From Entomortierella parvispora E1425 (lineage: Eukaryota; Fungi; Mortierellomycota): a stretch of DNA of 64,000 nt. The notes under the pieces were generated by a model, which saw nothing but the letters and a program-made list of their open reading frames with translations, was not told where the DNA came from and did no database searches. Made by a program: the position numbers and the translations under genes. Each line of letters begins with the position of its first letter. Positions within the stretch are counted from its first letter, which is position 1. The stretch lies in contig BQFW01000001.1 in the NCBI GenBank assembly GCA_020891255.1, forward strand, positions 124,001-188,000. Direction: 5' to 3'. Below, in pieces: positions 9,474-64,000 of this stretch.

Positions 9474-9511
<38 letters not shown>

Positions 9512-29809: not shown

Positions 29810-31340
29810 TCGAAGCGCGTTTTTCCCCCTGGCGTCTCTCCCGTCTGCTCTCCTCTCATCGACTTCTCATGTCTCCATCTCTCCATGCCCTGCCTGCATC
29901 GCCCCATTCCACCATCCTTCTCCATCACCGCTCTTTCATCCATGCATTAGCCTCCATTCACTCCATCTCTCAGTCATCGACTTGATGCATCTCTTGATTC
30001 TCTTGGCATGGCGAGGTTTAACTGCACTTGTGAAGACTATTGAGGTCCAAAAGACCTGATCTCCTTCACAATGGTTGCCTTGGCTGACTTACCTTTCAAA
30101 CAAGATGATTCACACATGAGATCAACTTTAGTAGCGGGACAAATGGTCGAATGTTTATTCATCACCAACTTTGTAAAGTAGTAGTAGTAGTTTATTTTTT
30201 GAAGTTCTTTTTCGCAAGTCCATTTTTTTTTTTTGGTCAGAATTAAAGAGAGAAAACAAGAATTTTAATAATAGAGTGCTTTGAAATGGAGTGGAAGTGG
30301 AAGAGAGTGCTTTGAAAGTGGAAGAGAGTGCTATGGAAGTGGAAAAAAAGGGGAGAAAAGTTAAGTTTCGAAGAAAAAAAATGGTTTGTGGAAGAGATAA
30401 AGTGAGTTGGCGTACCAAGTCCCCCGATGTTTGTTATAGATGCTGACGACTGCGTGCCATCACCACATCCCATCGGGGATCAAGGATTTGTGGAAGAAAC
30501 AAAGAGCAGTACCAAGTCCCCGATGTTCGCTGACGACTCTGGGCCATCACCTCATCACATCGGCATCATGGATTACGGCCCACTATCCTAACTACACTAG
30601 GGCTAAACTAACTAGTCTAGAAGCGAAGGAAGAGGGACGGAAGAAAAGGAAGTTTTCTCTCTTGATTCTTGTTTCTTGAATTCTTGTTTCTTGTTTCTTG
30701 GATGGGGGGCCCTAGACCAAAGAGGGCAGGGAGGCAACTGTGTTTGAGAGGCAGGCCAGGCGGTCTTGAGGGCCAAGGTCAAGTCTGAAAGGGTTGGATG
30801 ACCTTGAGGCCGAGGGAGGCTGAGGCTTGGGCCGGGGCAGGCAAGCGGGCAGGCGGTCTTGAGTCCGAGGCGGGTCTTGAGGGCCAAGGTCAAGCCATGA
30901 GAAGGCAGACAACTTTGAGGCCGAGGCTTGCGCTTGAAAGGGCGGGCAAGTTTGTGGCCAAAGGCTTGAAAGGGCAGGCAGGTTTGCGGCCAAAGACTTG
31001 AAAGGGCAGGCAGGTTTGCGGCCAAAGACTTGGAAGGGCAGGCAGGTTTGCGGCCAGAGTCTTGGAAGGACATGAAAGGTGGGCCGGGAAATCAAGACCG
31101 TTGGGACCGGGGCCAAGGAGGGCAGGACCGAAGCTGAAGGGCCGATGTCGTTGGACCGGAGTCACTTGTTGCTGGCCGATGGGAGGATGGAAGCATGGTG
31201 GTGTGTGCTTTATGTGCTTTGTGTGCTTTGTGTGCTTTGTGTGCTTTGTGTGCTTTGTGTGTCTGGAAGGGGAGTGAAGAAGAAAAGAAGGATGAGGAGC
31301 AAAAAAAAGAGGGGGAATCATGGGGGGTATTTGTATGAAA
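29810..31340 (+). repeat. Left arm of large palindrome (inverted repeat), with internal 32-bp and 9-bp tandem subrepeats
   Basis: Reverse complement of 31769-33300. Mirrored ORFs 30155..30418/32696..32959, 30243..30473/32641..32871 and 30440..30679/32435..32674 have identical translations; their coordinates sum to 63114 (axis ~31557). Confidence 0.95.
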
Positions 31341-31768
31341 AGTGTTTAACTTATCGACTGCGGCCCCCCCACGACATGGCGACATGAGGGAGGGAGGAAA
31401 TCGATTGGTCCAAGGGTGAGAGAACAGCGAAGGAAGGATGGCGATAGGCCCGCCGAAACATGTGAAAGAGAAGATAAGCGAGAGAGCAGACGTTAACTTT
31501 GGGTGTAGAGCGAAAATAAGAGAACTGACTGCGCGTGGACGCGAAGTCAGACGTGCCATTTTGCCATGGAGGATGAAAATAAGGGAACTGGCCACGCGTG
31601 AACGGGCCATTTTTGCCATGGTGGATGAAAATAAGGTGGCAGATGGCGACGCGTTTTCGCTTTTTTTTTGAAATTTGGTGAAATTCTGAAAAACAATGAT
31701 GGCTTGGCGGATGAAAACAAAACAACATCCTCAACTTGGGCGAAGTACGGTCCACCTCCAACAGTCCC
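31341..31768. other. Unique 428-bp spacer of the palindrome containing three ~52-63 bp direct repeats
   Basis: GAAAATAAG at 31512, 31575 and 31627; GCCATTTT(T)GCCATGG at 31555 and 31606; ACGCGT at 31594 and 31649. Confidence 0.8.
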
Positions 31769-33300
31769 TTTCATACATATACCCCCATGATTCCCCCTCT
31801 TTTTTTGCTCCTCATCCTTCTTTTCTTCTTCACTCCCCTTCCAGACACGCAAAGCACACAAAGCACACAAAGCACACAAAGCACACAAAGCACATAAAGC
31901 ACACACCACCATGCTTCCATCCTCCCATCGGCCAGCAACAAGTGACTCCGGTCCAACGACATCGGCCCTTCAGCTTCGGTCCTGCCCTCCTTGGCCCCGG
32001 TCCCAACGGTCTTGATTTCCCGGCCCACCTTTCATGTCCTTCCAAGACTCTGGCCGCGAACCTGCCTGCCCTCCAAGACTCTGGCCGCAAATCTGCCTGC
32101 CTTTCCAAGTCTCTGGCCGCAAACCTGCAAACCTGCCTGCACTTTCAAGTCTTGGGCCGCAAGGTTGCCTGCCTTTTCAAGCTCAAGCCTCGGCCTAAAA
32201 GTTGTCTGCCTTCTCATGGCTTGACCTTGGCCCTCAAAACCTGCCTCGGCCACAAGACCGCCTGCCCGCTTGCCTGCCCCGGCCCAAGCCTCAGCCTCCC
32301 TCGGCCTCAAGGTCATCCAACCCTTTCAGACTTGACCTTGGCCCTCAAGACCGCCTGGCCTGCCTCTCAAACACAGTTGCCTCCCTGCCCTCTTTGGTCT
32401 AGGGCCCCCCATCCAAGAAACAAGAAACAAGAATTCAAGAAACAAGAATCAAGAGAGAAAACTTCCTTTTCTTCCGTCCCTCTTCCTTCGCTTCTAGACT
32501 AGTTAGTTTAGCCCTAGTGTAGTTAGGATAGTGGGCCGTAATCCATGATGCCGATGTGATGAGGTGATGGCCCAGAGTCGTCAGCGAACATCGGGGACTT
32601 GGTACTGCTCTTTGTTTCTTCCACAAATCCTTGATCCCCGATGGGATGTGGTGATGGCACGCAGTCGTCAGCATCTATAACAAACATCGGGGGACTTGGT
32701 ACGCCAACTCACTTTATCTCTTCCACAAACCATTTTTTTTCTTCGAAACTTAACTTTTCTCCCCTTTTTTTCCACTTCCATAGCACTCTCTTCCACTTTC
32801 AAAGCACTCTCTTCCACTTCCACTCCATTTCAAAGCACTCTATTATTAAAATTCTTGTTTTCTCTCTTTAATTCTGACCAAAAAAAAAAAATGGACTTGC
32901 GAAAAAGAACTTCAAAAAATAAACTACTACTACTACTTTACAAAGTTGGTGATGAATAAACATTCGACCATTTGTCCCGCTACTAAAGTTGATCTCATGT
33001 GTGAATCATCTTGTTTGAAAGGTAAGTCAGCCAAGGCAACCATTGTGAAGGAGATCAGGTCTTTTGGACCTCAATAGTCTTCACAAGTGCAGTTAAACCT
33101 CGCCATGCCAAGAGAATCGAGAGATGCATCGAGTCAATGACTGAGAGATGGGGTGAATGTAAGGCAAATGAGCATGCATGCGTTTGAACGAATGGAATGC
33201 TGGAAGAAGGATGGAGGGATGCAGAGATGGAATGGAAGCATGGCCACCAAAGAGGACGCGCTTCGCCCAAAGATCAAAGAAAAGAGCCCATTTTTTTTGT
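31769..33300 (-). repeat. Right arm of large palindrome
   Basis: Inverted copy of 29810-31340. Apparently identical over ~32260-33117, more diverged in the 32-bp array and distal to 33117. Confidence 0.95.
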
Positions 33301-34870
33301 CTTCTTTGTCCTGCTTTGTCCTTTGTCCTTCTGGTCCTGTGGACCTCTGGTCCTCACTCTTCTGAGCCAATGCACCCACCTCTCATCTCCATGGATCATG
33401 AGTGAATATGGTATCTGTTCATTCTTCCTGCCCCCGCTCTCTGGTCAACAGCATATATTGTCCATCGTTTTGCCACAGGCCTTATCTCTAATGGCTCCAA
33501 GGACCAACAACGGCCACATAGATTCGAGGTTGTCTCTTCTTTATTTTTCTCTGCGCCCTCAAACTAATACTATCTATCGGCTCGCAAATGACGATTCATC
33601 ATCTATTGTACATCTTTCATAAAGCCCTGATGGTTTTACAAAATGGCAGGCGTCAATTGACGCAGTTGCTATGGACGACAAGAGTTTGAACATTAGAAGG
33701 CAAAGAGTCCATTCAGTTCTCGTGTGGAAACAAAAAGTTGTCGAGACATCAAAACCTCGCAGGAGATTGCTGTTATTTTTTCTTTTTCTGCATCTCTTTT
33801 GTTCTGGTTCTTGCTTTCGTTTCTTGTGGGTGGGCTGTCCTATCTGAAGAGAGGGCATCCTCCGTGGTCTTTCTCGGCTTTTACTGCGCTTCTTGGATCC
33901 AACTGCAGTGGAAGCAGCGTTGATACCAGAGGAAGGACCTTACCTCTGCATCTTGTTGTCCGCTCAGTGTTTGCAGAATGTCAATTTGATGTTCCAACAC
34001 ATGCAAAGATGAAGGCAAGACAATTATAGCGGTGTATGGCTCGGGTTGTCTGTTTATGCCTTGATGTCTAATGATTGTCATCGAAGAGCCATCCACAATT
34101 GTTTAGGGACGGTGATAGCTGCTGTAGATTAAGGTAGTTGATTTCGAGCGACACCTCTCGTGAAGCGGCACTTCAAACCGTGTATGCTCATGATTGTTGA
34201 TCAGCGACGGTGGCAATGCGCTAATTGATGCCCTTTCATCCCACGTTGAGGTGTAGAGAGTTGATGCTTGATGTTTGAGTGGCATCTATTGTGGTACTCT
34301 TGTGTTGCTGGTTCTCGGTTACGTAGGAATGAGCGGCGACGAGTGATAAGATGACGCCCAGATTCCCGCGTCCAGAGATGTTGGTCGAATATATGATAAA
34401 TGGGCGGTACGTAGTATCTGTTGTCCGTCACTGTATTTCAAGTCTTGGCGTTGACGATGTCGAGAAACAGGAGAATCTCGGATTCCACGTATTCGATGAG
34501 GATGGGTGGGTACAGAATAACGGATGGCGGGGTGGTATCCGTGGCTAGGCTTTCACGTTACATGACTTGAGGTTTTGGTGTTGATGATGGCAACTGACAA
34601 ATGAATGGCCAGTGGTCCTGAATCCAATTAGGACGGATAGATGCAAGATAGCTGGATGGCATCCATGGACAGACTCTCGTCTCGCTGGCCCTTGCATTTG
34701 GGTTCTGGTGTTGACGGGGGGCAGGTTGCATGGATGTTCCTACGTCCATGAAGCTGGATGGACAAGAGGAAAGGACGGTATCTATCGTTGAGTTTCCGTC
34801 TCGCCGGGTCTTGTGATCTGGATGATGATGTTGACGAGGGGCAGATTGGATGGATGCTGCCGCCAGAGTT
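33300..34870 (-). repeat. Non-coding block contiguous with the right arm; inverted homologue of ~61900-63450
   Basis: Colinear inverted peptide matches in the ORF track: FLVGGLSY (33724..34029 vs 62675..62923), ESGRHLIT (34201..34431 vs 62328..62510), LTRGRLDGC (34813..35010 vs 61883..62092). Confidence 0.88.
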
Positions 34871-35021
34871 GGAATTATCGCCTCCTTTGTTTTGACCGGA
34901 TCATGACTTTTGGTAGAGCAATGTTGTGGGTATTGTTCAGAGAATGGCGCTTGAAAAATTCATGGAGACTCCAAAATGCTTTTATTGAAGGAATGGCCAG
35001 AAGGCTCTAGAAAGAAACCTC

Positions 35022-37828
35022 TCACGGCGCGTCAGTGGACGAAGGGACAAAGGTGATAGCTGTTCCAAGGTATTCGAGCAATGACTTTTCACGGAAGCTC
35101 TGAATCTCTCCAAACTGGTTCCTACGTGGGTACTGTATGATGCAGTCAACCACTCGTTCTAGAAAAGAGGAGGGAGGATTAAAGAAGATATTGTTAGTTG
35201 TCATAAACGAGGATAGAGAAAAGCAAGAGACGAGGCAGGTAAGGCAGGCGAACTTACTGGGATCAATAGTTTTGCCTGAGGACTCCACAACCTTCAAAAA
35301 GTTTTCAATCTCCAGCTGCAACGCCGGGATTCCAAACGTGTAATAATACAGAAGCATGTCGTCGTTGGATACAGTGCTGCCTGTGCCAATAACAGTGCTC
35401 TCACGAAGAACCGAAGCAGCCATCCATTGAATCACAAACTTAAGCTGCATATCGCCTCCAAAGGCACCACAGCCCCAGTTGCCCGTAGCAATGGGATGAG
35501 ACGTCAAAGAGTCCTGCAAATGGATCGAAGGTCGGAATCCAACCAAGCATTTGTTGAACTCTCGCAAGATCGAGTACCGCTCGAACTGGTTCAGACGCGA
35601 GATCTTTGACTTGAAGGGGGTCGCATCGATGGCACAAATATTAGTCATCCGACGACCAAGAGCGTCACTAGAATGAGATATGAACGTCAGAGACCAGATT
35701 TGTTTTAAGATAATGAAATCCGTACGATGCTGTGCAGTTCTCTACTTACCGAGGGACTGGATCCTTGTGATCAGAGTACCATTCAAAGGTCTTGCTGTAT
35801 CCAATGTAATTCGAATACCTTTCGGCGCCTTTGATCAGCAAGGACTCGTTGGCCTCCAATTGAGTAGTGAACAGCCGCGAAATGATCAATTCAGGACAAA
35901 TCATGAATCGGATCTCTTCTTGTACGGCGCCCTACAAAGTCGATTCCAGTCAGATGTCACCCTTCTACACAGACAAGCAATCCTAATAGCATTCATAAGA
36001 TGCTTACCCTGTCTAAAGCACCACCGCCAATGTTCTTGTTGGCAAAATCCATCTGTAGAGCGGCTTGTGGAGCCTCTTCTAGAGGAGTAACCGAGTCCAC
36101 GTTGACCTTGTGGAAATGGAATCCGTTGAGTTCACCAGTATCCTGACCGGCCTTGAGGTAAACTGGTTTCCTGATCACCTGCCGATGGTAAGTCACGGTT
36201 CCCGTAGGCACTATTGATTGAAAGTGAGGGGTTAGTTTTAGTACTTATAGTTAAAGAAAATTCTCCTTACGAATCTCAATAGTTGTGGGTGCTTACTTTC
36301 TGTGGTTACTCGGTCAAAGTAGTGCAGAATACATCGAAGCTTCGCGGCCTGGGCGGTTGAACAGGGGGTCAAGCTCGAGGTGTCTTCGGCCCAAAACAGG
36401 CTGATAAAGTTAATCGAAGGCATCTTAGGGCCACGCTCGTCCTTCTTTTCCTTGGCATCGTCGACCACAGCCAAGTTTTCGACGCCAGAGGCGAGTGCGC
36501 TCAAACACTCAGCCTTCAGCCTAGCGCAGAGCTCCGAGGGTTCGCCGTCTTCAAAGAACTCAAATAAGGCCGCTGTGCCTTTAGCTCTTCGCTTCCTGGG
36601 GGGTCGAGGCTCGTTAATTGTGCTAAACACGTTCTTCTTGCCTCCACGACCAGACGCCTGGCCACCACCTCGACCCCCTCGGTTGGAAGATCCGCCGCGG
36701 CTAGATGCTCCACCACGAGTCGCCTTAGTCGTGGATACAGAGCCCTTGTCTTTCCTCTTAAGGACCTTTCGATCGTTGGCCTCATCGTTGGAGTCTTCGG
36801 AGTCATCTTCGTCATCCTCAGGCTGATCATTTTGCTGTTGTTGACCTCCAGAAGAGCTGGATCTCTTGAATCCAGGCCTCTTGGTGAACCGCCTGCTTCG
36901 CTTGTTGGGGACGTTTCGACAAGGGAAAGTATTGAAAAAGGCATTGGCGAGCAAGCAGGCAATCTGTTCCTGAGAGAGCGTAATGGCCGAATCCTGCTGT
37001 TGCATAAGAAACGGGATTGGCTTGTGAACAAGTTCTGGTAACCTCAGAGCAAGTGCCTGCATCCTTGGCAAAATCACGTCAAAGAATCGGGTCCGTTCCT
37101 GGAGACTCAAGTACTGACTCTTCAAAGGTGCAGAAGACAGTTGAGGAGAGGAAGAGGAGGTCCAGGCGTTGGAGGCCGACAAAGATGGAGTACTGGAGCC
37201 TTGCTCCTGCTGGCGAAGGACATGCTCCTGTCGTTGAGCTTCCAACCATTTCTGGTGGTGTTCCTCATCCAAGATCCGATCTTCCTCATCATCGTAGCTG
37301 TCGTCCTGAGAGTCGAAGCGGTCCTTGGTGGCCAATCGATCCTCCTCGTCCAGGATTTCGGCTTCCTCAGACAAGGTGCCTTGATCATGAGTCGATTCGT
37401 ACAGACTGTGGGCATTCAGAAAGTACTCGAGGACCTTAATGTTCCAAGTCTGCTCCTTAGCCTTGTTCCATCGAAGCATGACTTCAGACAGTTGGTCCGT
37501 GTTGGTGATCTTCGTTTGGAGACCTTCGACAATCTCAGGCCACTGGGAGACGTCGTTGTAGTGTCGCTTGGAGCAAGGCAAGCGGACGTGCTCGTTGTCC
37601 CAGCTGTCCTGGAATTCTTCAGGGAAGGAGGGCTGATCGAGACCGGGGATCTATGACCAAAGAAGCGAGGTTTATGTAAGTTTGTCACTGGTTTGTCATG
37701 CATGCTTTGGTAGCACAGGATCGCTTGGGGGCGGATGCCACCTCTACCTTGCAGAGAAGGAGGTTGGGCCCGGTTTCAAAGTACTGGGACGACGCGTCGC
37801 TGCTAGAGCTGGAGTTGGAGCAGGACAT
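35022..37828 (-). CDS. PARG: Poly(ADP-ribose) glycohydrolase (exons 37828-37748, 37650-36297, 36210-36008, 35931-35750, 35667-35258, 35158-35022)
   Basis: Spliced catalytic signature [32 protein letters not shown], plus GAERYSNYIGY, ATGNWGCGAFGGD and DSWDNEHVRLPCS. GT-AG introns keep the frame. Confidence 0.93.
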
Positions 37829-39081
37829 GATGGATTGGTTTTTGTCTTTGAAGACTGAAGAGGGTGAACGTTGATGTGGTTGTAGTAGTGTTGTTGTTGA
37901 CGATGCGGGTGGGTTGAGATAGAGGAGGAAGAGGAAAAGTCAGCTTGCTTTTATAGCGATCGCGGGAAGAGATGCAATCCGGACACGGAATTGGAGAGAA
38001 GACGATGGAAAGAATCCACGGGACAGGGAATGGCAGGCGAAGGGAATGAGGAAAGGGGTAGGTGCAGGCCAGCGGACAGACGGATGAGAAGAACAAAAGT
38101 CCAATGATGAACAACGCCATCCATGACCTGACCAGCGATGACCCTTTCTTCTTTGTGTCCATCACCCTCTTGTGCGGCGTACATGTAGGTTTCGGTTAGA
38201 GTTCATTCGGGCGGTGCACCACTGCCACTGCCGCAGCAGTCACGTGGAGCGAGATTTTTTTTTTTTTCCCTTTCTCGCGTCTTCACGGTTGAAACGCGCC
38301 GCAGTTCGCGTTCTCTTCCAGACTTTGTCAATGGGATCGACACTAAGAAGAGCTGGCGCAGTGATCAATGGTGGCAATTGCTATTGAAATCTGATCATCG
38401 ATCATGATCGTGGTCAGACCTGGTAATCTTGCGGGTTGTTGTGTTTTCAAACGACCAACCCTTCGTGGGCTGCCGATCACCTTCACTTTTTCTGCAAATT
38501 CTATTGTCAAAGGTTTCATGTAGATAAGTGCCGCGGAGTTGTCATGCCCATCCAATTGATGTGTTCAGGGTGAACCAATAGAACACCCGCCCACCAACAT
38601 CGCCGAGCCGTTCCAGATTTCTGCTGAGCTGCCCTGCAACAAACATTGCCTTTACCAATTTACCCCCTTTTCAGACCTCGAAATCTTGTTCCAGCACGCT
38701 CTCATGCGAAAACCTATGATCCCTTGTCCCTGCTCTCCTCACTCGACACTCTTCCTCAGCTTTTGTAACTCGAGCTTCTTGTTGAGTCCACCATCCTCAA
38801 AGCATCCCATTGACCATCAATGGCGCATGCACTTCCTTGAGGTAAAATCCATTACGGACTTTTCGGTTTGATTTTTTTTTCACCTTCATATTTAGAAGTT
38901 TAAAATATTCACCGAGTGATAGATGAACGTCATCATGGGTTGATTTCCCCTCTTCTTCAGACGGCTGCAACTTTCACCTTTCTTCTCACCATTTTATCAC
39001 CATCTGCACATAACCCACATCCTACACTGTTGCAAACTCCTTCCCTTACCTCCTTCATAATCGAAAAAAGGAACCTCGACA

Positions 39082-39776
39082 ATGGCGGACCAACATCACT
39101 CCTCCGCGTCCGACATGCTGTTCGATGCCACTCAGAAGACAAAGATCCAAGCGCAGTCCGCCTTATCTGCTGTGAAAAAGAATGGGGTCTTTCAAAACTA
39201 CGTTCAACCGGCTCTGGAACGCGTCTGGGACTTGCTCAACCGAACTCCTTTCCTTCTCAAGATTGCTCTCCTGGGCTTCTTCGGCTTGAGCGCCGTCCCT
39301 CTCGGCTGCTTCTTCGGGTTCATGAGCATCGTCACGGTCGGATGCTTTGTCCTTGGTGGAATCGCCTTTTCAGTGGTCGAGGCAAGTAAACAGGGCATCT
39401 GTTATTGTGTATTTCGCCAGGAGGAATGGTGGGTGATGATAATAACACGAAAACAACTTGTTCATAGGGCGGTTTCGTCATGTTTGCCTCCACCTTTCTG
39501 CTGCCAACTCTGGGCGTGTCGCTCTTGATCGCAACCGGGGTTGGGTTTGTTGGGTTTTGTCTTTACATGACCTACGTGGTTTTGAACAGGGTCTTTGGAG
39601 ATTCTGTCGACAATCAAACCACAGCTGCGACGGCGGCTCGCCATGGGGCGGAGGAATCAAAGGGTCGAGCTGAAGCGATAGGTCAAACTATTCAACATGA
39701 AGCAGGTCATTTCAAGGACAACCTCAAATCCGTCATGCCTGGCGGTAGTTCCAGGCCTGCTGTTCCTAGACAGTGA
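39082..39776 (+). CDS. Promethin / LDAF1-like lipid-droplet membrane protein (exons 39082-39381, 39468-39776; GC-AG intron)
   Basis: Four closely spaced hydrophobic helices (LKIALLGFFGLSAVPLGCFFGF...VVE|GGFVMFASTFLLPTL). Frame is restored by an intron with donor GCAAGT at 39382 and acceptor CATAG at 39467. Confidence 0.65.
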
Positions 39777-39940
39777 AAATTTGGCCTCTGAGCCATCTGC
39801 CTGACGCGTTTTACAACAATAAAAAAATCTCGAATAAATATCCTGTTTAGTAGCCAATTTTATCCTAGAATAGACTGTGACTACCTTGCCACCTCCACCT
39901 GGCCCATGGCCTTGTTCATCGCCTTCATCTTCACCAACCC

Positions 39941-51653: not shown

Positions 51654-51692
<39 letters not shown>

Positions 51693-51751
51693 CAGCAACA
51701 ACAGCAACAACAGCAACAACAACAGCAACAACAACAGCAGCAACAACAGCG

Positions 51752-51787
<36 letters not shown>

Positions 51788-52268
51788 GCAGCAGCAGCAG
51801 CAAGTCGGGATGGACGCCAATGGAATCCACGGAGAAAATAGTACAAGTAATATTAGCGGGAACAGCAACAATTCGTTTAATCCGATTAGTCAGTTTGGCG
51901 GAAGCGATGGATCTACCTCTGGATCGTCCATGTTATACCAACAACCTCCGTTTCATCAACAGCAACAGCAGCAACATCAACTAAAGTTACATCATCTACA
52001 GCAACAACATCACCAGCAGCAACAGCACCAACATCAACAGATGCAGCAGCAGATACAACGACTCCAGCTTCAAACTGCAGCGGCACAACAGCAACATCAA
52101 CAGCAACATCAACAGCAGCTCCATCACGAGCAACTGAAAATGCAGCAGCAGCATCACCTCCACAACAATCACCAGCTGTACCATGAGCAGCCAACGGGTG
52201 ATACTGCGGAGGGTCCAAATCAGAGCACATCCACCGAAAAAGAGGTACTATCGCTGCAACAGAACTAG
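48056..52268 (+). CDS. Multi-exon nuclear protein: PHD finger + linker-histone H1/H15-like winged helix + long polyQ tail
   Basis: PHD CVLCQQNHDDPENQIVLCDNCDRGFHQLC...WLCYSC (49147-49300). H15-like PPYEEMIYRAISDLKQEAGSAPKAILDWVQA|HYPVPETFRASCGQAISKAAKKGRLLKEASLYKL (49988-50290). The terminal exon is Q-rich. Internal exon borders are approximate. Confidence 0.72.
51608..52190 (+). repeat. CAA/CAG polyglutamine-encoding tracts
   Basis: Mixed CAA/CAG runs at 51608-51801 and 51955-52190 within ORF 50508..52268. Confidence 0.9.
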
Positions 52269-52479
52269 CTAGATTTTTTTCTTCTCATTTTTATCTTTTT
52301 ATTTTTTGAACCCAAGTGGAGGACTTTCTTTCGTTTGTCCTTCAAATGTTTGCATATAAAACAAAACAAACATACCCGATTGTTTTTCTCGTCAAAACGA
52401 AGGAGAAAAAGAAATATAAAATAAAAAAAGACATCTCACTCCAATTGTCTCATCATTGGCCTGCCGCTCTGCTAGGGTG

Positions 52480-55400
52480 CTAAACAGCCCAGCAAATGGT
52501 TCTTTCAGAACAACCCAAGGCCAGCGGACCAAACCGTTTTTCAGCTCCCGAGATTTCATATTGGGTGACAAAGTCCACTCCTGGCGCCTTGTCCAGCGGC
52601 TGTTGACGCCAGCTCTCCTGCTCGTCATCCTCTCTCTCGGCTGCTGTATCGATCACAGCCAAGCCCTTGAGGGCAATTCGAGTAGACCCTTGGTTTGAGG
52701 AATCTGCGCATGGCATCAAGTTCAAAAGAGATCCAAAGTCGTCAGGGATAAAAGCGGAACCCCAAAGCAATTAGATATTCCAAAGTCGAAAAGTCCAGTG
52801 CACGGATCAGTCGGGCCCAACCATCCTCCTCTTCAAACTTGAAATCGATGAATTCCAGTTGAACCAAAGAAGCAATGTCCCTTGATTGAACTGCAGTAGA
52901 AGAAGAGGTCGACGACAATGACGGAGACCCTGCGGGCATGGAGATCAGGTTCAGAAGCAACGAGATGTCGTAAAACATGCCTCTTGCATCTGCCATACAG
53001 AGACTCAAATGAGTCATTCGCGGGAGTAAGCTCCTATCCAATTTGCACCGCAAGTTCCGCAGCCAAGACAAGTCTGGGGACATGACTACTTCAGTTGCAA
53101 AAGGACCGAGTCGAGTCAATACACCCTGGGTGAGCTCATGATTGGACTCACTGCTGAACTCGATTTTGAGAACCATCAGTCTACGAGACTCCTGGATGAT
53201 ACTCCTCAGTGAATCCAGAAGGGACAGAGTTATCGCGCTTGGTTCGGATGAAGACCGACATCAGCAAGGACTGTCCCTGACGTTCCTCAATGGCAGACAA
53301 GATATAGAGGAATATTCCCGGAAATAGATGCCTCTTATCCATAACTGCCAAGGAATCCAGATGATGCCCCTTGAGCTGCATGAATAGCTTCCGCTGTTCT
53401 CCTTTGACTACCTCCCTAAAGTCATGTTGGTACTCTTGAAGAATGATTGACTTCAACTGAGTAGTGGGAGTGATTGCGCCATCGCTGTCGAATTTGAGAG
53501 TCGCCTGTGCCTCGTCGACGAAATCCTCCAGCAAGAGGCGTCGAAAAGCCGTGCCGTTGCCGCTCCCATCATGGACCAAATCGTGCTGTAGTTGAATTAC
53601 AGCTTGCTCTAAAGAGGACAAAGATTTCCAACCTGGAGAGACCAGGTTCAGGTCTCTTAGGCTCCGGCCCTCCTTGATGGTAACTCTTAATAGGATCAAG
53701 AGGTCTTCATCGCAGTGGGTTAAAAAACCTAGACGCAAGCTCTGAAGAGTGCTGCAACACTACAAGATTCGAGAGAGAGTGATTTCCGAAGAATGCTTTC
53801 TGATCATCTCAATATCTAAGCTCAAATGACGGAGATGCAGAGCCGATTCTGGAATTGCAGAGAGATCCACTCTGCTGAAGATAGAGGGAGAGGATCCAAA
53901 TGTTGCTGAGCGAAGACGACTTTTGGCGAGTAGCTGGATCAAAGGGGTGTGGCGCCGCTTGCCATTCAAGATCTCTGCAGTTGGATTTTCAGCAGAACAA
54001 TAAAGTTTCAGAGAGATTACCGCCGACTTGTCGATGGTGGATGAGAGCGTCCTGAAATCTTCCGTAGTACACTCCCAGGTCGAGGTGACATCCAAGTCAT
54101 GAACGCCTCGAGCATTCTCCAAAGCTGAGTAGAACGTCTTTGTCTGAGTCATGCTCTTTGAATTCGCGGTAGTTTTTTTTTTGTGGCCCCCCGTGCTAGA
54201 GCCATGTAAAACGAAACGCATTTTCTTAACCAAATAATGACGTCGACTTTGCTCTGGTCAGCTGACGTCATGTAAACTGGCCCCGTGCTAGAGCCATGTA
54301 AAAGAAAACGCCGTTACTTAACGTGTACTTAACGTGTACTTAACGTGTACTTAACGTGTACTTAACGTGTACTTAACGTCGCCTCGGTTTTGTTGAGTGA
54401 CGTCGACTTTGAGAGAAATGGCGGTCCCTTGGAAGAGGAAACGGTCGCAGTGGTGGTAACACTGCTCTTGATGCTGCCGGCCTGTGCCCCTGCATGTGGG
54501 CAGGGTAAAGACTTTTTGTTGGCAGGCAGTGAAGAGGTCAATGCTGGAATGGAGGCGAAGGACGTCAACAGCGGAAGTGGTCCAAACAAACCCATTTGAC
54601 GTGTCCCTGGCTCGTCACCATCTTGTAGAGATTGCCCAGAGCTCCAGTTTTATCTGAGTCGTTCAAGAAATGTCGTAGCTGTCGAAGCTCAGCTCCTTCC
54701 ATCGTCTCGACCCGGCTCAAGGGCTCCTGTGGCGACTTATTTTCGTTGAAGATGGCACCCCGTCCCTGTTTCATCTGATCCTCAATAAAAGATATGGAGA
54801 TATCAACCATCCCTCCAAGCGTCTCTTTAGTGAACTCTGAGTTGATCACCGATATTGCTGAGGCCTTCTGCAATATTGAATTGTGCCAGCGAAGGAACGA
54901 CGATCCCGGCGGTGGCTACTCCGAATTTGACCATATTCAGCATAGCCAGGACGTATGGGTCGTACTTTTTGAAGAAGAGCTTGGGGTGGTTAATATCGTA
55001 TCCTGTATGCTTTGCAAGGTGTGCTTCGTCAGGGACCTTTGCTATACCGCATCGTATGTGTACCGCACTCACAAAGGAAGTAGAGTCGGAATTGCCTCGA
55101 AAACCACCGTTGAGCGGTATCACGACGTCGAATATCCTTTGGCAGGACGATAAATAATCTTGGGATCGGATACTCGTGCAACTCAAAGTTCTGAGTCAAG
55201 ACGGTTTCCAGACGAGTATTGATTCTGTCGCACATCTGCTCTTGCACGGTCGCCATCGCTTCCTGAATCTCTAGAACCTGTGCTGTCAAGGCTCCCTTCC
55301 TTTCCATTTTTGTCATTCCGGCCATCATCATGTCCTTGACATCGTGTGCCAGCTGCGCATGGTTGTCCGCCACAGTTTGTGTAAGGAGTGAGAGGATCTC

Positions 55401-56036
55401 CACAACCTCAGCCTTCACCAGGTCTTTGATGCGATCCTCCTGAGAATCAAGAACTGCTCATGTAGGAGTCACAAGTTCGAGGCAAACTCTGGAGGGATGA
55501 CGATATGGAGCCCGACGAAAAAGAATGACGGTGGGACAGATGCAATAGGCGAGGGGACTTGGCCCAAGAGAAGTAGTACGGTCTTTCGAAGTGCAGCGGT
55601 GATGGTGACCGAGAAGGGGGGCTGTTTGCTGCTGGGGCGATGTCGTCGTGAAACACGAGGTCCAGGATCGTGCCCTCTCGGTACAAAATTCGAAGGGGTT
55701 GCAGCCTAAAGACGCAAAAAAGCAAAACATAAGTATAAACATAGCCCAACTCTTCCTTCACAGAAAATGGTCGAGATTACATGGCTCTTTTTCGCTTACT
55801 GTGCATGGTCCTCGCCATGGAGAAATGACTCTAGCACCGTGCCGTTCATGGCGCATTTGGCCCTGGGCCAAATGGCAAGCACATCAGACCAACGAATGAC
55901 CAGTTTTTGAAGACTATGGTCCATCACAGCTCGGATGCCCCATCACAGCTCGGATGCCACGTTGCTGAGGTGGAGAGGACGAGCAGGCTGACTGGGCGCG
56001 AAAGGTCTGGATGAATTGCGTCTCCTCTAGAGTCAT
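52480..56036 (-). pseudogene. Disabled lineage-typical LRR/NLR-like gene
   Basis: Family motifs QTFR...VIRWSDV, ELHEYPIPRLFIVLP, FRLYFLCECGTH, HLAKHTGYDI, GHVKWVCLDH and ARGVHDLDV are spread over 7+ ORFs. Lesions: 19-bp tandem duplication at 55921-55958 (frameshift), further frameshifts, in-frame TAG at 53760-62 and a 398-bp insertion. Confidence 0.8.
54173..54570 (-). mobile_element. 398-bp polyA-tailed retroposon-like insertion with imperfect 7-bp TSD
   Basis: On the minus strand the host reads GHVKWVCLD-H|insert|YRE. Flanks CTTCCGC (54577-54571) and CTACCGC (54172-54166); A10 tail (T10 at 54173-54182). Internal dimer of GGCCCC(CC)GTGCTAGAGCCATGTAAAA / TGACGTCGACTTTG and an 11-bp array (ACTTAACGTGT x ~6, 54316-54378). 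Confidence 0.65.
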
Positions 56037-56707
56037 GGTGGGGAATGGGGAACGAAGAAGAGATCAAAGGTGCAAGGCAATGGCAAAGGCGATCCGTGTT
56101 TGTGATCACAGGAAAGGCCTTACGCGCTGGCCCGCAGTCAGCAGGTCATTGCAGGGTGGTTGCGTGCAAAAGGGAAAGGGCATGACAAACTGAAGAAGGA
56201 TGAGGGATTGGAGTCAAGAGTTATGGTGGGTGGGTGGATGGATGGTTGATGGAAAAGCAATCGCGTTTGTTCCCGTTCCTGGATTTTTTCTTTTCTTTTT
56301 GTTTGCTCCGCTGCAACTGAGACAGCGTGGATCTCTTGCCCATGCACCACCTCGCCTTCTCCTCCTCCTTCCTTTCTTCTTTCGTTCACTCTTCCGTTCC
56401 CTCTTTCTTTACGTCTTTTCGCTCCCACCTTCGTTCTTTACTTCCTTCCTTCCTTCCTACCTTCCTTTCTTCTTTCCTACCCTCCTTCCTTCAGTCCTCC
56501 ATTATTGCATTCTCCACAGAGACTCAACCCCAGTCGCCACCAAGTGAAAAAAGTTGGTGGCGCGTGTGTGACTGCTGAATTTTTGCCGCATTTGCCACCA
56601 GCGAGCCAGCCTCAAAAACGCGCTTGCCATTGCATGGCTCATGCTCATTCAGTTCCTTTGACATCTTCCAGTCTCATTGCCTTCATTTGCCTTCTGAACG
56701 CATAAAG

Positions 56708-59358
56708 ATGTCACCCTACAACCTTCGCAAGAGTACCCTCGATAGACGGGATGCCCGAAGGTAAACAACACACACACTCTCTCTGCTCTGCCTTGTTTTT
56801 GTTTTTTTTTGTTCGCGTCTATTTCCCCCTGCAAAGGGGTGAGTGATGTTGCACATAGACTGCGGTGCTCATACCATCCTCTTTTGGGCTCTCTCTGTAT
56901 CCTTTAGCGCGGTCGCACCATACGCTGTGCCCAGCAGCCGCCGCCGCCGATCCCTTTCCTCGGAGGGAACTGTTGCCGCTGTCTGCCCTTGGTACAAAAA
57001 CATCCATGACAAAGCTTTGCAAAAGACTCCATTTTTGACCTCGCAACTTTTTTGTTTGGTTTCTGGTCGCTCATCTTTTTGGAACGATATGTCTGTATTC
57101 TTTTTTTTCTCTTTTAAATAGTAACGGAGCAGGAGTCGAGAGAGGTGTTGAGTCTCCTCCTCGCCGTCCGTCCCGCCAGGTGCCCAAGAAGCGTGCCAAG
57201 GAGACCCTTGCCCCTGTAGATGCGTCTCGACAGGCGTCGTGCCAGTAAGTGAAGCGGACAATACCAACATGCAAGCGCAGTATGAGATGTTTCTTCTCTG
57301 TCTTTTGGTATCAAACATAAATATTGATGCGCCTCTTTGTTTATTCTCTATGTTCCAGCGTGGACGTAAGCGCCACCGCCGACGGCCTCTTGCAGGTGGA
57401 CGGAAGAGCCCCTGTCGAAGACATGTTCAAGGAGGATGGAAGTGCCTCCGATGCTGCCAGGGACGGAAGTGCCCAATCTGGAGTTGTGAGCAACTCGGCA
57501 GCATTCCGGCGGAAGCGGGTCAGTGAGGACGATGTCGCTTTCGCACATCGCGCCTCGAAGAAGAGACGTCAGGAGGAAGTTGCGGCTCCAAAGAAACCTG
57601 TCTTTGTGATTCGCTTTCCAAGGTCCCTTCTTCCTCCTGTGCCTGAGGGAACAACAGCAACAGAACAAGAGTCGTGCCGGTAAGTGAAGTAGTTGTTTTG
57701 ATGGATGGCCTGAATATTTGCCCCTTATTGTCCATACACTATCGTAGCATCTACTCACTTCTAATATTTTTGCCTTACTAGTGTGGACGCAAGCGCCACC
57801 GCCGACTGTTTGTCTGGGGAGGACAGAAGTGCCTCCGATGCTGCGTGCGACTCGCCAGCATCCCGTGGAAAGCGACCCTTGGAGGAAGATGTCGGTGGCT
57901 CGCATCACGCCTACAAGCGGTCTCGCTCCGAGAGAGAAGTCGTGGTCCCTAGAAAGCCGATCGTTTTACGAATCCGGATTCCAAAGGCCCTTCGTCTCCC
58001 TGCCCCGCAGACAACCCCACGCTCAGCACTGAAGGCAGTGCACATTCCCGAAGGTCTGGTCCCAGGTATTGCCACTTGTTGTTACTTAGTGTGCTCTTGC
58101 CACATATTACACTGCCTCTTGTGACAATGGTAACTAATACTAATGTCGTATTTCTCTTGAAACTCATCTAGAACCGACCAACAAGCCGTCCATCGAGATG
58201 AGGCTCTACCGAGCGAAGGCTTACAAGGCAGGCTTGGTGGCTCTGCCTATTGGCGAGCCATTCGACGCCTCGCTAAATCTGGGCAACGTTTTCGCGAGGT
58301 TAGTGTCTTCTCATCCATCATACTCACCAGCTGTTGCATATTCTGTTTCCCAAAGCTGGCATACTAACATATTACTTGTATCTTTTACCAAAAAACAGCC
58401 CTGCGATCGAGAGTGGAGAGAGCTCGGACGCAGCACTCTATGTCTTTGTCCATGATCTGTAAGTACTAATCTCAGAAATAGGAACGTGCTCAAACGTTGA
58501 AATCTCTGACCATGATAATATATTTCTTTCTGTTTTAGTCCCAGAGGTTCGGAGATCGTCATGTTGAAGTACATGAGCAAGATCTTGAGAAGTGGAAGCG
58601 GCCTTGTAGACGTGGCTGTCCCCACTCAGCCAACAGCCGGTGCGGAGAGGTCTCGAGCTCTTCGGACCATCACCACGCAGTTGCTGTACGCGTGGGACAC
58701 CTACGTAGCTCGCGCTGGACGGAGAGTGGTATTGCTTGGCTCAGGACTCGGGAGCTTTGCCATGAAGTCGCTCATGGAAAGCCGCCAAGAGGATATGAAG
58801 CGTGTGGTTGCATGTGCCATTTCCCTTCATGGAGACATAAAAGCTTTGCCTTCTGTGGGTTCCGAGTTTGTGAACTGGTATCATGAGAACACCTCGGTCC
58901 TGGTTCCTGAGTTGCATCCGGCTATAACCAACAGGAAGGAATGCCGTGGAAATGTCATGGCAGCCCGTAAGTATCTTTGAATCGGGTTAACTTTGTTGGC
59001 TTTGTTGGCTCTACTCACTTTTCAGGTTGGACTAATATACGACGCTTTTTATTTAGTCCTTCTACAGCCAAATGTCAAGGGTGTGGACATGCTGAGAAAG
59101 GTCCGTCGCCGTGTGTTCAGGATGGTTAAGCCGAAGTTGAAAGGGTTCCCTGCACCCACTCGAGCCATGAACAACGGTCATGAGATAGAGAGGCTTGACA
59201 GTCAAAAGGACTCTGTTCGCTGGCTGGAGCCCCTGGTCACAGGTGACGATGGAGGACCAGCCTTCGACCCTTTTGACTACGAGAGGATTGCCAGAAGAAT
59301 GGAGCAACTCCACTGGGCCAGGACCAATCCGCCGTCTTTGAGTGCGCCCAAGTCGTAA
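56708..59358 (+). CDS. Multi-exon protein with tandemly duplicated basic exons and a C-terminal Hda1/Clr3-type Arb2 domain, no deacetylase domain
   Basis: Spliced RLYRAKAYKAGLVALPI...LYVFVHDL|PRG...LLYAWDTYVARAGRRVVLLGSGLG...FVNWYHENTSVLVPELHP resembles the class II HDAC C-terminal Arb2 domain. N-terminal exon structure is tentative. Confidence 0.55.
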
Positions 59359-59713
59359 CCGCCAGTAATCTTCCTTGTGAGTCTGTTCGTGAGCCTATGT
59401 TGACTGGGATCAAGTTCAAATGACTCCATGGTCCCCGTCTGTCATGTTCAATGTGAGCCGATCATCAGACCGTAAAGACCGCCGTCACTTTGGATACGAA
59501 TCTTGACCCAAAAGAAGTGGAACGCTGCTTTTGACGAGGACAAGAAGCTCTACGTTGTCTAAGCTGTTGTACGGCCAGAAGCATTCCACCGTCGCCCAGC
59601 TCGTCCAGAACCCTGAGAAGAACGATCCCATGAAGTTCTCCATCGTCGTTGCCGCCACTGCCTCCGAGGCCGCCACCCTTCAGTATCTCGCTCCTTTCTC
59701 TGGATGTGCTGTC
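59343..59713 (+). pseudogene. ATP1: Internal fragment of mitochondrial F1 ATP synthase alpha subunit gene
   Basis: With frameshifts it reads AQV..LP.ESVREPMLTGIK..DSMVPV..VQ.EPII..QTVKTAVTLDT.L.QKKWN..DEDKKLY...[45 protein letters not shown]. Walker A is corrupted. Confidence 0.9.
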
Positions 59714-59819
59714 TTGAGGGTCAATTGATACAAGGCTACTGACTACTAGCATCGCGAAGAATACAAGGAGCAGGCTCTTCTGACCTGTTCTGCTGACATC
59801 GATACGCGGGAGCTCAGCA

Positions 59820-62150
59820 GTGGATATCCCATCCAGCAGCGCGAATCTATCCATCGTCATACTTTGCAGGGACATCAGCAAGTGCTTTTTATTCTCTTGC
59901 CATCATCAACAGTCAAGACACTGGACCAAGTGAGACGGCCTCACAACAACAATGAATACCCATCTCAGCCCCCTGAATCCGTCCATCGTCATAGAATCCA
60001 AGGACATCATCGAGTGCCTCTAATTATTCTCTTGCCACCGCCGACGCTCAAGACACTAGAGCAAGTAAGATGGGATCACGACAGCCGTTGTCATCTCAGC
60101 AGCACGAATCCTTCCATCCTCATAGGATGCAGGGGATATCTCCAAGCGCCTTTCACCCTCTTGTCATCATCAACACTGAAGACATTGGAGCAAGTGCGGC
60201 TGGTCACAACAACCGATGTTCGTCTCAGCACCCGAATCCATCTGTGCGGGGCAATCATCGAGTACTTTTCATCGTCAACACTCTGAAAAGAGAATTCAAC
60301 AACGGATGTCACCGCAGTACCTGTATCCACCCTGCCACAAACGATGAGCCAGCAGTGGTAGCTTTTGGTCTTTCACCGCCAGAATCACTCGATGCACACC
60401 ACCATTCAACAGATGCTACAAAGCATTCCACATCCATTTCCACAGGATACATTGGCATCAAAAAAAACCCCCCTCCACGCCGCCATTGTCGCCGTATGCT
60501 TCCTGGAGTCTGCCACCTCAAAAGACAGTGAAGCAAGGTACAATACTGACACCTTCAGCGACCAGCAGTGAACGCCTCAAAAGACGGAGACGAGAGATAG
60601 CAGCAAGGGCACCTTTCCATCCAGCTTTCCATCCCTCCAACCGTCTCCAAAGGGTGCAGGGATGTCATCGGGTGTCTTCTGGCAGATACTCAATCTCCGT
60701 CGGCGGGAATCCAGGTTTAATGTCTACCACGTTTGGTATCAGCTAGTGGTTGATCCTCGGGTGCTCAATTGCCTCCAACATATCTGGATCCCAGGTCGTA
60801 GTTGTAAGACTTGGCGTCGACTGCAGCACTTCCGTCAAGCTCCTGAATCCACCACTTGCGCCACAGGGACATCTCAAATTGACCATCATCCCCTACAATG
60901 GTGGCAACACACGACGGTCGTTTGTTTGGTTCGACTTCTCTTTTGGTTCACAACCACTGCTCAGGACCACAAAACCGGTCGTAGTGACCATCCGTCTATG
61001 GATGCCACCCAAATACCATCACGCCATTATTCAAGATTTCAAGAGCGACTTACCCCAATATCCAGAGTCCATCTGTTCTCATGAATCAAGGAATGTAGTG
61101 AGAATCCGGCTCTATCGTCGCTACTATTCACCATTCGCAACTCCCAAGATCTCAAAGGACAACATGTGTCTCTTGCAGCATCTGTCAGTCAATACCCCCA
61201 AAACAACCGCAACACTCAAGAACCCAAGAGCCATCGAAGAACAATCTTGTCATTTTTACCTACCTATCCGCACTGGGTGCAAGGAGATACACGGGTGACG
61301 TCTGATCCGACAGGAGGCCAACAATGGATACCGCCTAGCCATCCTGAATCCGTCGCATTGGGTGCAGGATTCAGGGACAACAACGGATGTTGTTTTACTC
61401 CTCGCCACCATCAACTCCCAGGACCCGAAGATCTGATGGATGCTTATTTTACCAATTTGCATCCATCCGTACTCATCAGATTCAGGGGTATTATACAGTC
61501 GGATCTCTTGTCACCCTAGTCGCAACCACCGATACGCAACCATCGACTTCAGAACTTCAGATTCTGATCACCCTGCAAAAGATACCGCCCATTCATATCG
61601 CATCCATCCTTCGTCAAAGGATGCAGGGCCATTAGAAGTGGTCTGGCATCCCGGCACTATCAACACTCAAATCTTAACATATGGCGAGACAGGAACACAA
61701 CAAGGATATCACCAAGTCAATTACATCCAAACGGTCACCAAATGGTGCAGAGATGTTGATAAGTGTCTTGCATCTCGGCACAATCAACAGCCAAATCTCA
61801 AGATTCAGCGAGACGTGAGCTCAACAATGGATACCTGGATATCTTCCATTCCTCTTACCCATCCATCTTGGATGCAGGAATATCAACAAGTGTCGTCTTG
61901 CCCATCATCACTATCAAATCCAACAACGCAAGAGACGACGTGTGAGCCCACAGCGGATGCCACCCTGCATCCATCCAACCTGCCCCTCGTCAACATTAGA
62001 ACCCAAATCGCAAGGGCTAGCGAGACGAGAGTCAGCCAATGGATACTATCCAGCTGCTCGCATTCATCCATCCTAATTGGATGCAGGACCATTGGCGATC
62101 AATTTGTCAGTCGCTATCATCAACACCAGAACCTCAACCTCAAGACTTGT
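59820..62150. repeat. Degenerate ~130-bp tandem array with a recurrent CATCC-n-GGATGCAGG hairpin motif
   Basis: (C/G)AAGACA(C/T)T(G/A)GA(C/G)CAAG at ~59914, 60048 and 60178 (periods ~134 and ~130). Progressively decayed units continue to ~62100, e.g. CATCCTCATAGGATG at 60115 and CATCCATCTTGGATG at 61860. Confidence 0.7.
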
Positions 62151-64000
62151 AACGTGAAGGCCTAGCCACGGATACCACCCCACCATCCGTCATCCTGCCC
62201 CCCGCATCCTCATCGGATATATGCGGAATCAGAGATTCTCCTGTTTCTCGATATCGTCAACGCAAAAATTTTGAAATCCAGTAAGAGGGCACCGCTCATT
62301 CATCATACATTCAAGAAACATCATTAGATGCAAGAATCTGGGCGTCATCTTATTACAGTCGCCGCTCAGTCCCACTTAGCCGGGATCCGGCAACATAAGA
62401 TCACCACAATGGATCCCACTCAAACATCAAACAACAGCCCTCTATACCTCGACATGGGACGAAAAGCCATCAATTGGGCCATTACCACCGTCACTAATCA
62501 ACAATCATGAACGTACACGGTATGAAGTGCCGCTCCACGAGAGGTCTCGCTTTGAAATCAACTACCTTAATCTACAGCAGCTATCACTGTCTCTATACAA
62601 TTGTGGATGGCTCTCCGACGACAATCATTAGACATTAAGGAATAGCCAGACAAAGCCCAAGTTAGACACTGCTGTTATTGTCTTGCCTTCATCTTTGTAT
62701 ATACTGAAACATCAAATTGAGCTACTCCACCCACCGGCATTTTCACATTCTGTAGACACAGAGCGGACAACAAGATGCAGAGGTAAGGTCCCTCATCTGG
62801 TATCAACGCATCAACGCTGCTTCCTCTACAGTTGAATTCTAGAAGCGCGATGAGAGCCGAGAAAGACCATAGAGGATACCATCTCTTCGGATAGGACAGC
62901 CCACCCACAAGAAACGAAAACAAGGATCAGAACAAAAGAGATGCAAAAGAGAAAAAAAAATCAGCAGTCTGCCAACGGGGCTTTGATGTCTCGACAACTC
63001 TTCACTCTTTGTTTGCACACAGAGAACGGAATGGACTCTTTGCCTTCTAATCTTCAAACTCACTCTTGTCTCCCTAGCGATTGGGTCAATTGACACCATA
63101 CATTTGGTAAAACCATCAGGGCTTTATGAAAGATCTACAATAGATGATGAATGAAAAGATGATAAAGATTCTCTATCCCTCAAACTGATATGATCTGTCA
63201 GTTCGCACGGAAAGTGGCTGGCAATGGACAGATGATGTTTGCACGGGCACAGGTATAATGAAGGAGATGGGTCGGTGAAAGACAGAAAGAGACAGCTTTG
63301 AATCTGGGTGGCAGTTGTTGGCCCTTTCAGCGGCCCTTGCAGCCAATGGAAACCAGGCCAGTGGCACAACGATCTGCAATAGATGAAGTGGATCAGAGAG
63401 GAGGGGACAGGCAGGATGAACCATATTGTATGAAGATGATAGATGGATGCGTTGGCTCAGAAGAATGAGGGCCAGAGGTCCACAGGACCAGAAGGACAAA
63501 GAAGGACAAAGCAGGACAAAGAAGGCAAAAAAAAAAAACGGGCTCTTTTCTTTGATCTTTGGGCGAAGCGCGTCCTCTTTGGTGTTCATTCTCCCCATGC
63601 TTCCATTCCATCTCTGCATCCCTCCATCCTTCTTCCAGCATTCCATTCCTTCAAGCGCATGCATGCACATTTGATTTACATTCACTCCATCACTCCATCT
63701 CTCGGTCATTGACTCGATGCATCTCTAGATTCTCGTGCCCTGGCGCGTTTAACACTGGTGCAGACTACTGAGGTCCAAAAGAGCTGATCTCATTCACAGT
63801 GATTGCCTTGGATGACTTATTCCCTTTCAGACAAGATCATTCACACATGAGGTCAACTTTAGTAGCGGGACAAATGGTCTACTGTTTATTCATCACCAAC
63901 TTGTAAAGTAGTTCCCTTTTTTTTTTTTTTGAAGTCTTTTTTTTTTGGTCAGAATTAAAGAGAGAAAACAAGAATTTTAATAGAGAGCTATGAAAAGGAG
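61900..64000 (+). repeat. Third, diverged copy of the palindrome arm plus its flanking block; runs off the window end
   Basis: 63700-64000 matches 29970-30290 in direct orientation (CACACATGAG.TCAACTTTAGTAGCGGGACAAATGGTC...GGTCAGAATTAAAGAGAGAAAACAAGAATTTTAA). 61900-63720 is the reverse complement of 33120-34870, roughly 80-85% identical by eye. Confidence 0.9.

Follow-up and report, generated by a model that had tools for sequence, protein, structure and literature searches.

We analyzed a 64,000-nucleotide (nt) stretch of the genome of the soil fungus Entomortierella parvispora E1425, hereafter called the window (bases 124001-188000 of contig BQFW01000001.1, assembly GCA_020891255.1, such that window position equals record position minus 124000). 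The window carries a large palindrome and two long inverted repeats that lie on either side of a block of genes. We refer to the left repeat as copy B, to the right repeat as copy C, and to a third copy as copy D. The latter resides at a locus designated L042, which corresponds to record positions 297344-318503 of BQFW01000001 and is reversed relative to the record.

On the left side of the gene block, the poly(ADP-ribose) glycohydrolase gene PARG and a gene for a 745-amino acid (aa) F-box-like protein (open reading frame (ORF) 26307-28703) are convergent. Copy B sits between them, within a 6.3-kb interval where the NCBI annotation places zero genes. The genes for promethin and for a 625-aa F-box-like protein are present in the NCBI gene table, and a PHD finger was found between the repeats by a domain scan. 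The genes that a preliminary description had listed as enclosed (PARG, promethin-like, two F-box-like, PHD-H15, an LRR pseudogene, Arb2, and an ATP1 fragment) are broadly right, except that two of them, the Arb2-like gene and the ATP1 piece, are components of the right-hand repeat itself, as detailed below.

The assembly of E1425 was built from 409x Nanopore data with Illumina polishing and comprises 38.7 Mb in 19 contigs; an RNA library of the same strain, prepared with TruSeq RNA reagents, was also sequenced (PMC8759367). Logan contigs from three sequencing runs (X1, X2, and X3) were placed on positions 29500-35400 at a likeness of at least 80%. Run X1 is DNA from the same strain, and several of its contigs match the window without a single difference. 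Run X2 is complementary DNA, because one of its contigs skips 35159-35257, a PARG intron with GT..AG ends and a CTAAC branch site. Run X3 comes from a related strain or species that differs by ~6-9% across the 3′ end of PARG, and its Logan contigs indicate that it also has the repeat family in several copies.

Inverted repeats, palindrome, and the ~11-kb unit

Comparison of the window with itself revealed a 3.3-kb palindrome at 29897-33229 (Table 1). Its arms are essentially identical from ~29985 to 30785, and the differences elsewhere consist mainly of the copy number of a 32-nt sub-repeat, plus the outermost ~90 nt. The same comparison showed that positions 61774-64000 on the plus strand mirror positions 34857-32823 on the minus strand, colinear over ~2.1 kb with ~80% identity. 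The core of this match (61968-64000 versus 34736-32823) is composed of two pieces of 1203 and 756 columns that are 80.6% and 79.6% identical, and weaker matches extend it to 61774 and 34857. The last ~315 nt of the window (63685-64000) also align in direct orientation with the outer portion of the left arm. Expect (E) values for the inverted-repeat matches range from 0 to 1e-92, far beyond chance. Both the palindrome and a colinearity of more than 2 kb had been proposed previously and are borne out by these comparisons. The ~130-bp repeat units that had been noted alongside them are present as a few degenerate units (at 59815-60242 and 61773-61892) and do not form a uniform array.

Copy B is read on the minus strand from ~34870, and the right arm of the palindrome represents the end of this unit, whereas the left arm is an inverted copy of its last 1.4 kb. 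The edge of the unit is also evident in the short-read data, where the unique X1 contig carrying PARG ends at 34849. RNA depth in X2 is ~0 over both the 1.5-kb block and the spacer of B, and the DNA contig depth of the spacer is 13-16 times that of single-copy sequence.

The DNA directly outside the outer end of B has its own repetitive character. Positions 29500-29752 lie in repeated DNA at ~4.5 times single-copy depth (X1; ~340 over 29500-29893 compared with 76 over PARG). A run of 27 A residues (29726-29752) closes this stretch and abuts the end of B. The whole stretch is absent from copy D, and it may derive from the 3′ terminus of a retroposed sequence.

A search with phmmer, using the exon of the Arb2-like gene at 58561-58977 as the query, recovered one close relative, P0121 (EMPS_00073; 84% identity), on the same contig. 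This gene lies within copy D, ~111 kb further along and in the orientation opposite to that of C. Alignment of the two loci demonstrated that the homology of C and D begins sharply at window position ~56578 (L042 ~3337), which places the Arb2-like gene and the ATP1 piece within the right-hand repeat and not among its cargo. The start of the right-hand repeat had been put at 61900 and is now moved to ~56578 on the basis of the alignment with D. At the other end of the unit, the similarity of B and D stops sharply at window position ~29754 (L042 ~19385). The interval truly located between the repeats is therefore 34870-56578, or ~21.7 kb.

The full unit is ~11 kb long and is composed of 1.6 kb of upstream DNA, the Arb2-like gene, an ATP1 fragment, CA-rich repeats, the 1.5-kb block, a palindrome of 3.3-3.5 kb, and a short terminal module. 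Copy D is full-length, as C (56578 to beyond 64000, plus strand) presumably is, and B (34870-29754, minus strand) is a truncated member that retains the block and the palindrome. The Arb2-like gene of C is colinear with the 300-aa paralogue P0121 across residues 1-300 and is apparently intact, as judged from its sequence. The 73-aa stretch downstream of it is recognizably ATP1-like. Upstream of the Arb2-like gene and inside the unit is a tandem pair of related ORFs of ~115 aa (57324-57683 and 57783-58124, plus strand), the first acidic and the second basic; in copy D, the second is interrupted by a retrotransposon. The pair may represent additional exons or a small gene of its own.

Copy D has its own palindrome, in which a spacer of ~640 nt separates two arms (L042 15965-17227 and 17867-19119) with a complementarity of 89-98%. 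Its upstream part is split at the match of window position ~57921 by an insertion at L042 4686-9751 (record ~308.8-313.8 kb). The insertion is a Ty3-type long terminal repeat (LTR) retrotransposon, because it carries a Gag gene with a zf-CCHC zinc knuckle and a 596-aa ORF with reverse transcriptase, RNase H, integrase, and chromodomain regions. Copy D is backed by independent short-read data, since a 32-nt insertion present in an X1 contig is found exactly in L042. The preliminary description had named long reads that expose the copies as assembly artefacts as a refutation. Such an artefact is unlikely given the 409x Nanopore contig, a locus D with the same architecture, and short-read contigs that reproduce B-specific and D-specific sequence exactly.

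Table 1. Coordinates of the repeat copies and associated features in the window, with corresponding positions in L042
Feature	Window positions	L042 positions	Strand	Remarks
Distal terminal module, copy B	29754-29896	19120-19385	-	Beyond outer arm; aligns with distal end of D
Palindrome left (distal) arm	29897-31340			95.8% to right arm by BLAST with gaps; 97.9% by substitutions in separate alignment
46-nt motif	30225-30270, 32844-32889, 63937-63982			Identical in both arms and copy C
Transcribed arm interior	30288-31272, mirror 31864-32848			Poly(A)+ RNA
Palindrome spacer of B	31341-31768 (~430 nt)			Mosaic of short multi-copy motifs
Palindrome right (proximal) arm	31769-33229			Runs on into 1.5-kb block
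1.5-kb non-coding block, copy B	33230-34736	14222-15900	-	80.6% and 79.6% to 61968-63690; 80-83% to L042
CA-rich repeat remnant, truncated inner end of copy B	34737-34870		-	~150 nt past PARG stop codon
PARG	35022-37828		-	788 aa, P0001, two Pfam domains; outside repeat, resident gene
Left end and upstream part, copy C	56578-58197	3311-4686	+	91% to L042
Arb2-like gene, copy C	58198-59358		+	~300 aa, apparently four coding blocks, Pfam PF09757, E 9e-12
ATP1 (F1 alpha subunit) pseudogene fragment	59507-59725		+	73-aa translated stretch; inside 87% match to D
CA-rich non-coding region, few degenerate ~130-bp units	59815-61967		+	
1.5-kb block, copy C	61968-63690		+	
Start of proximal palindrome arm, copy C	63685-64000		+	83% to 29952-30291; 89.7% to D mirror arm; window end cuts arm
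Match to D: upstream part	56548-57925	3311-4686		91%
Match to D: none (insertion in D)		4686-9751		
Match to D: Arb2-like gene, ATP1 piece, CA-rich repeats	57921-61707	9751-13509		87%
Match to D: block and arm start	61774-64000	14033-16201		80%
Match to D: block and right arm of B	34728-31766 (reverse)	14222-17231		80-83%
Match to D: arm	29952-31339	15882-17227		87.6%
Match to D: mirror arm and distal module	31344-29756 (reverse)	17862-19378		84%

The relationship of the copies was assessed with a three-way alignment of the block and the start of the arm. Identities by substitutions are 84.5% (B and C), 85.1% (B and D), and 85.1% (C and D), and the lineage-unique sites number 141, 131, and 126 for B, C, and D, respectively. 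On this alignment, the three copies form a star with no special pairing of B and C. Because they are equidistant at ~15% substitutions, they spread at about the same time. Between B and C, we counted 38 insertions or deletions (indels) and a longest shared exact stretch of only 54 nt. The indels of the block carry no coding signature, as 9 of the 38 are multiples of three. Since that spread, there has been no exchange of sequence among the blocks of the three copies.

Depth in X1 is 76 over PARG, whereas the summed values reach 394-492 in the 1.5-kb block and 500-2043 in the arms. Note that summed Logan contig depth is not equal to true copy number and that tandem sub-repeats inflate it in places, such that the block depth suggests only an approximate figure of ~5-6 copies per genome. 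Other loose ends of X1 contigs match neither the window nor L042, and therefore further copies must exist.

Concerted evolution and transcription of the palindrome arms

The presence of the palindrome at two paralogous loci permitted a comparison of four arms, two from the window and two from D. Arm identity is 97.9% and 95.9% within loci and 88.6-90.0% between loci, and 93 informative quartet sites group the arms by locus, compared with one and two sites for the alternative groupings. Because B and D have in common the inner arm boundaries, the proximal block, and the distal terminal module, the palindrome is older than the separation of the copies. Arm-to-arm gene conversion is the best explanation for the similarity of the arms within each locus.

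The spacers of B and D have only motifs of 30-40 nt in common, in rearranged order, and are not homologous as a whole; the center of the palindrome evidently changes quickly. One 40-nt spacer motif (31372-31411) occurs twice, in opposite orientation, in the spacer of D, and marks the point at which several short-read contigs from other copies diverge, and so has the appearance of a small module that recurs at the centers of palindromes.

The interior of the arms is transcribed. Summed RNA depth in X2 is 6,000-67,000 over 30288-31272 and its mirror, compared with 22-30 over PARG, and the RNA is confined to the arm interiors. RNA contigs that are exact or longest have depths of 136-402. At most positions that differ between the copies, the abundant RNA has the D-type letter, which indicates that most of it comes from other copies than the one in the window. 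Moreover, there is no sign of a hairpin RNA produced by read-through, because RNA depth in the spacer is near zero. An origin of the abundant RNA in a ribosomal DNA spacer was considered and set aside, given the mRNA chemistry of the TruSeq preparation and the lack of ribosomal RNA nearby.

Between loci, the likeness of the arm core (30383-30780) is 94-100%, compared with ~85% in neutral parts. The outer border of the transcribed interior is marked by a 46-nt motif in which a T/A run precedes a TATA-like or AUUAAA-like stretch, and a 50-column stretch from 30233 that surrounds this motif is 96-98% alike to D. By sequence, the motif might serve as a TATA-like promoter for inward transcription or as an AUUAAA-type end signal for outward transcription. 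The majority RNA variant carries GGTAAGT on the strand of inward transcription.

We found no long ORF that is conserved between the arm copies. A 76-aa ORF that starts with MGCGDG (30473-30243, minus strand; 32641-32871, plus strand) remains open in each of the four arms at a constant length of 231 nt, with a middle third that differs. Neither a Pfam match nor any relative was found for it, its recognition score in a protein atlas is low, and it is probably non-coding, although its conserved length is odd. Likewise, a homologue search with a 268-aa arm ORF yielded zero matches, and the collection holds no relatives of similar length. Searches of the arm against Rfam gave zero matches at gathering or permissive thresholds, and no transfer RNA was found. 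The arm transcript also exhibits no excess folding relative to shuffled sequences (z values of 0.04 and 1.11), and thus it is not a globally structured RNA. Two metagenome scans failed to detect the family: a 22-nt conserved arm motif had 0 matches, and a 20-nt sub-repeat had 33 single matches, all attributable to chance, with no similarity past 23-24 nt. These findings show that the arm interior is a conserved, transcribed, and apparently non-coding poly(A)+ RNA unit.

Gene order around the repeats

Gene order in relatives, a check that the preliminary description had proposed, bears directly on the origin of the left repeat. The genome of Gryganskiella cystojenkinii has orthologues of PARG and of the gene for the 745-aa F-box-like protein (55% aa identity) as a tail-to-tail pair separated by 220 bp, and their relative orientation matches that in E. 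parvispora. Because the two are direct neighbors there, PARG is in its ancestral place and the 6.3 kb with copy B is an insertion. In a closer relative represented by metagenome contigs (L002; ~77% DNA identity), the order and orientation of PARG, promethin, and the 625-aa F-box-like gene are kept.

Several further observations were made on these contigs. L002 has ~5.3 kb between promethin and PARG (3800-9300) that is absent in E. parvispora; this segment includes one ORF with a Crinkler domain, one with a Ribonuc_L-PSP domain, and two of unknown function. Four contigs of a close relative from four samples (L002-L005) all end in the last PARG exon, at window-equivalent positions 35101-35137, and three of the four end at the same base. 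This coincidence suggests a repeat or a strain difference that starts there in that species too. In addition, a 10.3-kb X3 contig follows PARG to 34950 and then continues for ~6 kb that is unlike 29500-34950, so the X3 strain may be without copy B at the PARG site. A homologue search with the 586-aa PHD-H15 ORF gave zero matches; the query is glutamine-rich and low-complexity words probably filled the candidates, which makes the result uninformative on the gene.

Origin of the inverted arrangement

We conclude that B and C are very probably two scattered copies of a duplicon rather than the ends of one bounded 27-kb cassette. The inverted repeats would be independent members of a low-copy family with a unit of ~11 kb and ~5-6 copies per genome. 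The roughly 22 kb of genes between them would be resident genes that by chance lie between two family members, and this interval would neither move nor flip as a unit. As in such a family, B, C, and D are moderately alike segments, each several kb long, that occupy several loci and among them hold a gene and a gene piece, with a depth 5-6 times that of single-copy DNA. The preliminary description had counted an undescribed repeat family among its two preferred alternatives. That proposal, framed for two members, was essentially right, except that the family is larger and its unit is a gene-containing duplicon of ~11 kb. Its bracketed element of ~27 kb is not sustained, given a third copy from which B and C are equidistant.

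Some points weigh against this conclusion. The copy number derives from the summed word depth of Logan contigs at a likeness of at least 80%, which is not a true copy number. Copies B and C are 22 kb apart and D is 111 kb away, which is unlike random dispersal in a 38.7-Mb genome, and local duplication rather than independent insertion may lie behind the clustered copies. The palindrome of C would lie largely past 64000, where its remaining arm, spacer, and mirror arm would be expected by analogy with D. The adjacency of PARG and the F-box-like gene is known from one outgroup genus, and Gamsiella has a different neighbor downstream of PARG. Furthermore, Logan contigs break at repeats, and thus a rare inverted isomer is compatible with the data. 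For the transcript, the largest RNA depths stem from contigs shorter than 131 nt, and RNA from the arms of the window itself is a candidate for expression that X2 depth does not prove.

An invertible segment, in which recombination between B and C inverts the enclosed 22-27 kb, has precedents in the 19-kb MAT inversion of Ogataea polymorpha (PMC5720833) and in a 24-kb flip/flop region on chromosome XIV of Saccharomyces cerevisiae. The latter is described as having 'almost identical' 4-kb inverted repeats that are continually homogenized (PMC9731477). The window resembles such regions in that inverted repeats of kilobase scale (~2 kb) flank a gene block of similar size (~20-27 kb), and gene conversion does operate in this genome, at least within palindromes. 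However, flip/flop repeats are homogenized within a strain and both orientations are observed, whereas B and C are ~85% alike by substitutions and ~80% with indels, have 54 nt as their longest identical run, and form part of a wider family in which B is as close to D as to C, and are therefore not homogenized. Mismatch repair strongly suppresses recombination between repeats that are diverged to this extent. The left junction retains the ancestral gene order and orientation, which is the only orientation seen. We therefore regard inversion of the segment, for which the data hold no support, as highly improbable.

Slightly less probable still is a composite, giant-TIR, or foldback element that would have the repeats as the ends of one mobile element and the enclosed genes as its cargo. 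The ends are inverted, the window alone gave no other explanation for their pairing, and lineage-variable genes (the F-box-like genes and a leucine-rich repeat pseudogene) are enclosed. As with foldback, long-TIR, and composite transposons, there are long inverted repeats with no mobility coding in the repeat and an intergenic insertion. Yet PARG, which would be the first cargo gene, keeps its outside neighbor in Gryganskiella, and the ends are not equivalent, because B is truncated and C runs 5.4 kb inward over the Arb2-like gene. The ends are also 15-20% diverged, with a third copy equally related to both. In contrast to foldback and long-TIR transposons, the unit carries its palindrome at a single end instead of both, the flanks beyond the arms are part of the repeated unit, and no target-site duplication is seen by eye (the far end of C being outside the window). 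The earlier remark that no transposase-type ORF is present holds, in that no transposase, integrase, or recombinase Pfam domain was found in the ORFs scanned, a scan that was not exhaustive, and no transposase relative is apparent here.

A refinement of the duplicon explanation deserves more weight than either of these, although we consider it unlikely: the ~11-kb unit might be a discrete non-autonomous mobile element of an undescribed kind, with B as a truncated insertion. Copies C and D have the same sharp left end, and the distal ends of B and D coincide to a few bases; the copies are equidistant, as a burst would leave them; comparison with Gryganskiella shows B to be an insertion; the X3 contig that departs at 34950 hints at a possible empty site; and the unit carries a captured gene fragment. 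On the other side, inspection by eye revealed no terminal inverted repeats, clear target-site duplication, or Helitron-type ends, no mobility gene is known, and all three copies seen fall inside 160 kb of a single contig, a pattern consistent with serial local segmental duplication. More doubtful again is a version in which the arm RNA or the self-correcting palindrome of such an undescribed element, each arm of which bears the conserved and promoter-like motif, would drive or guide its spread. For the duplicon family as a whole, segmental duplication and true mobility both stand as possible modes of spread.

The family shares features with other duplicated structures. Like segmental duplications, it has few copies of ~11-kb units at 80-91% identity, the units combine a gene that looks functional with a pseudogene fragment and non-coding sequence, and the copies cluster in both orientations on a single chromosome arm. 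Unlike them, its copies have coincident ends, which are more typical of mobile elements, and a palindrome ends each unit. Primate sex-chromosome palindromes have arms that are kept alike by arm-to-arm gene conversion. The palindromes described here likewise have two inverted arms and a spacer, with arms 96-98% alike within and 89-90% alike between paralogous loci in a structure older than the loci. They differ from the primate examples, which hold testis gene families, in that their arms are 1.3-1.45 kb long and carry a non-coding transcribed unit, and in that their spacers are short, fast-changing mosaics of short motifs.

These findings remove a tempting false lead, namely a giant cassette in an early-diverging fungus that would carry cargo or invert, and put in its place a duplicon family with defined boundaries, three copies of which reside on contig 1. 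Annotation should treat the Arb2-like gene as a multi-copy duplicon gene and the ATP1 piece as a pseudogene fragment. Because the same palindrome is found at two or more paralogous loci, the concerted evolution of its arms is shown directly (93 sites versus 3), and the data point to an abundant family of non-coding transcripts that is housed in palindrome arms.

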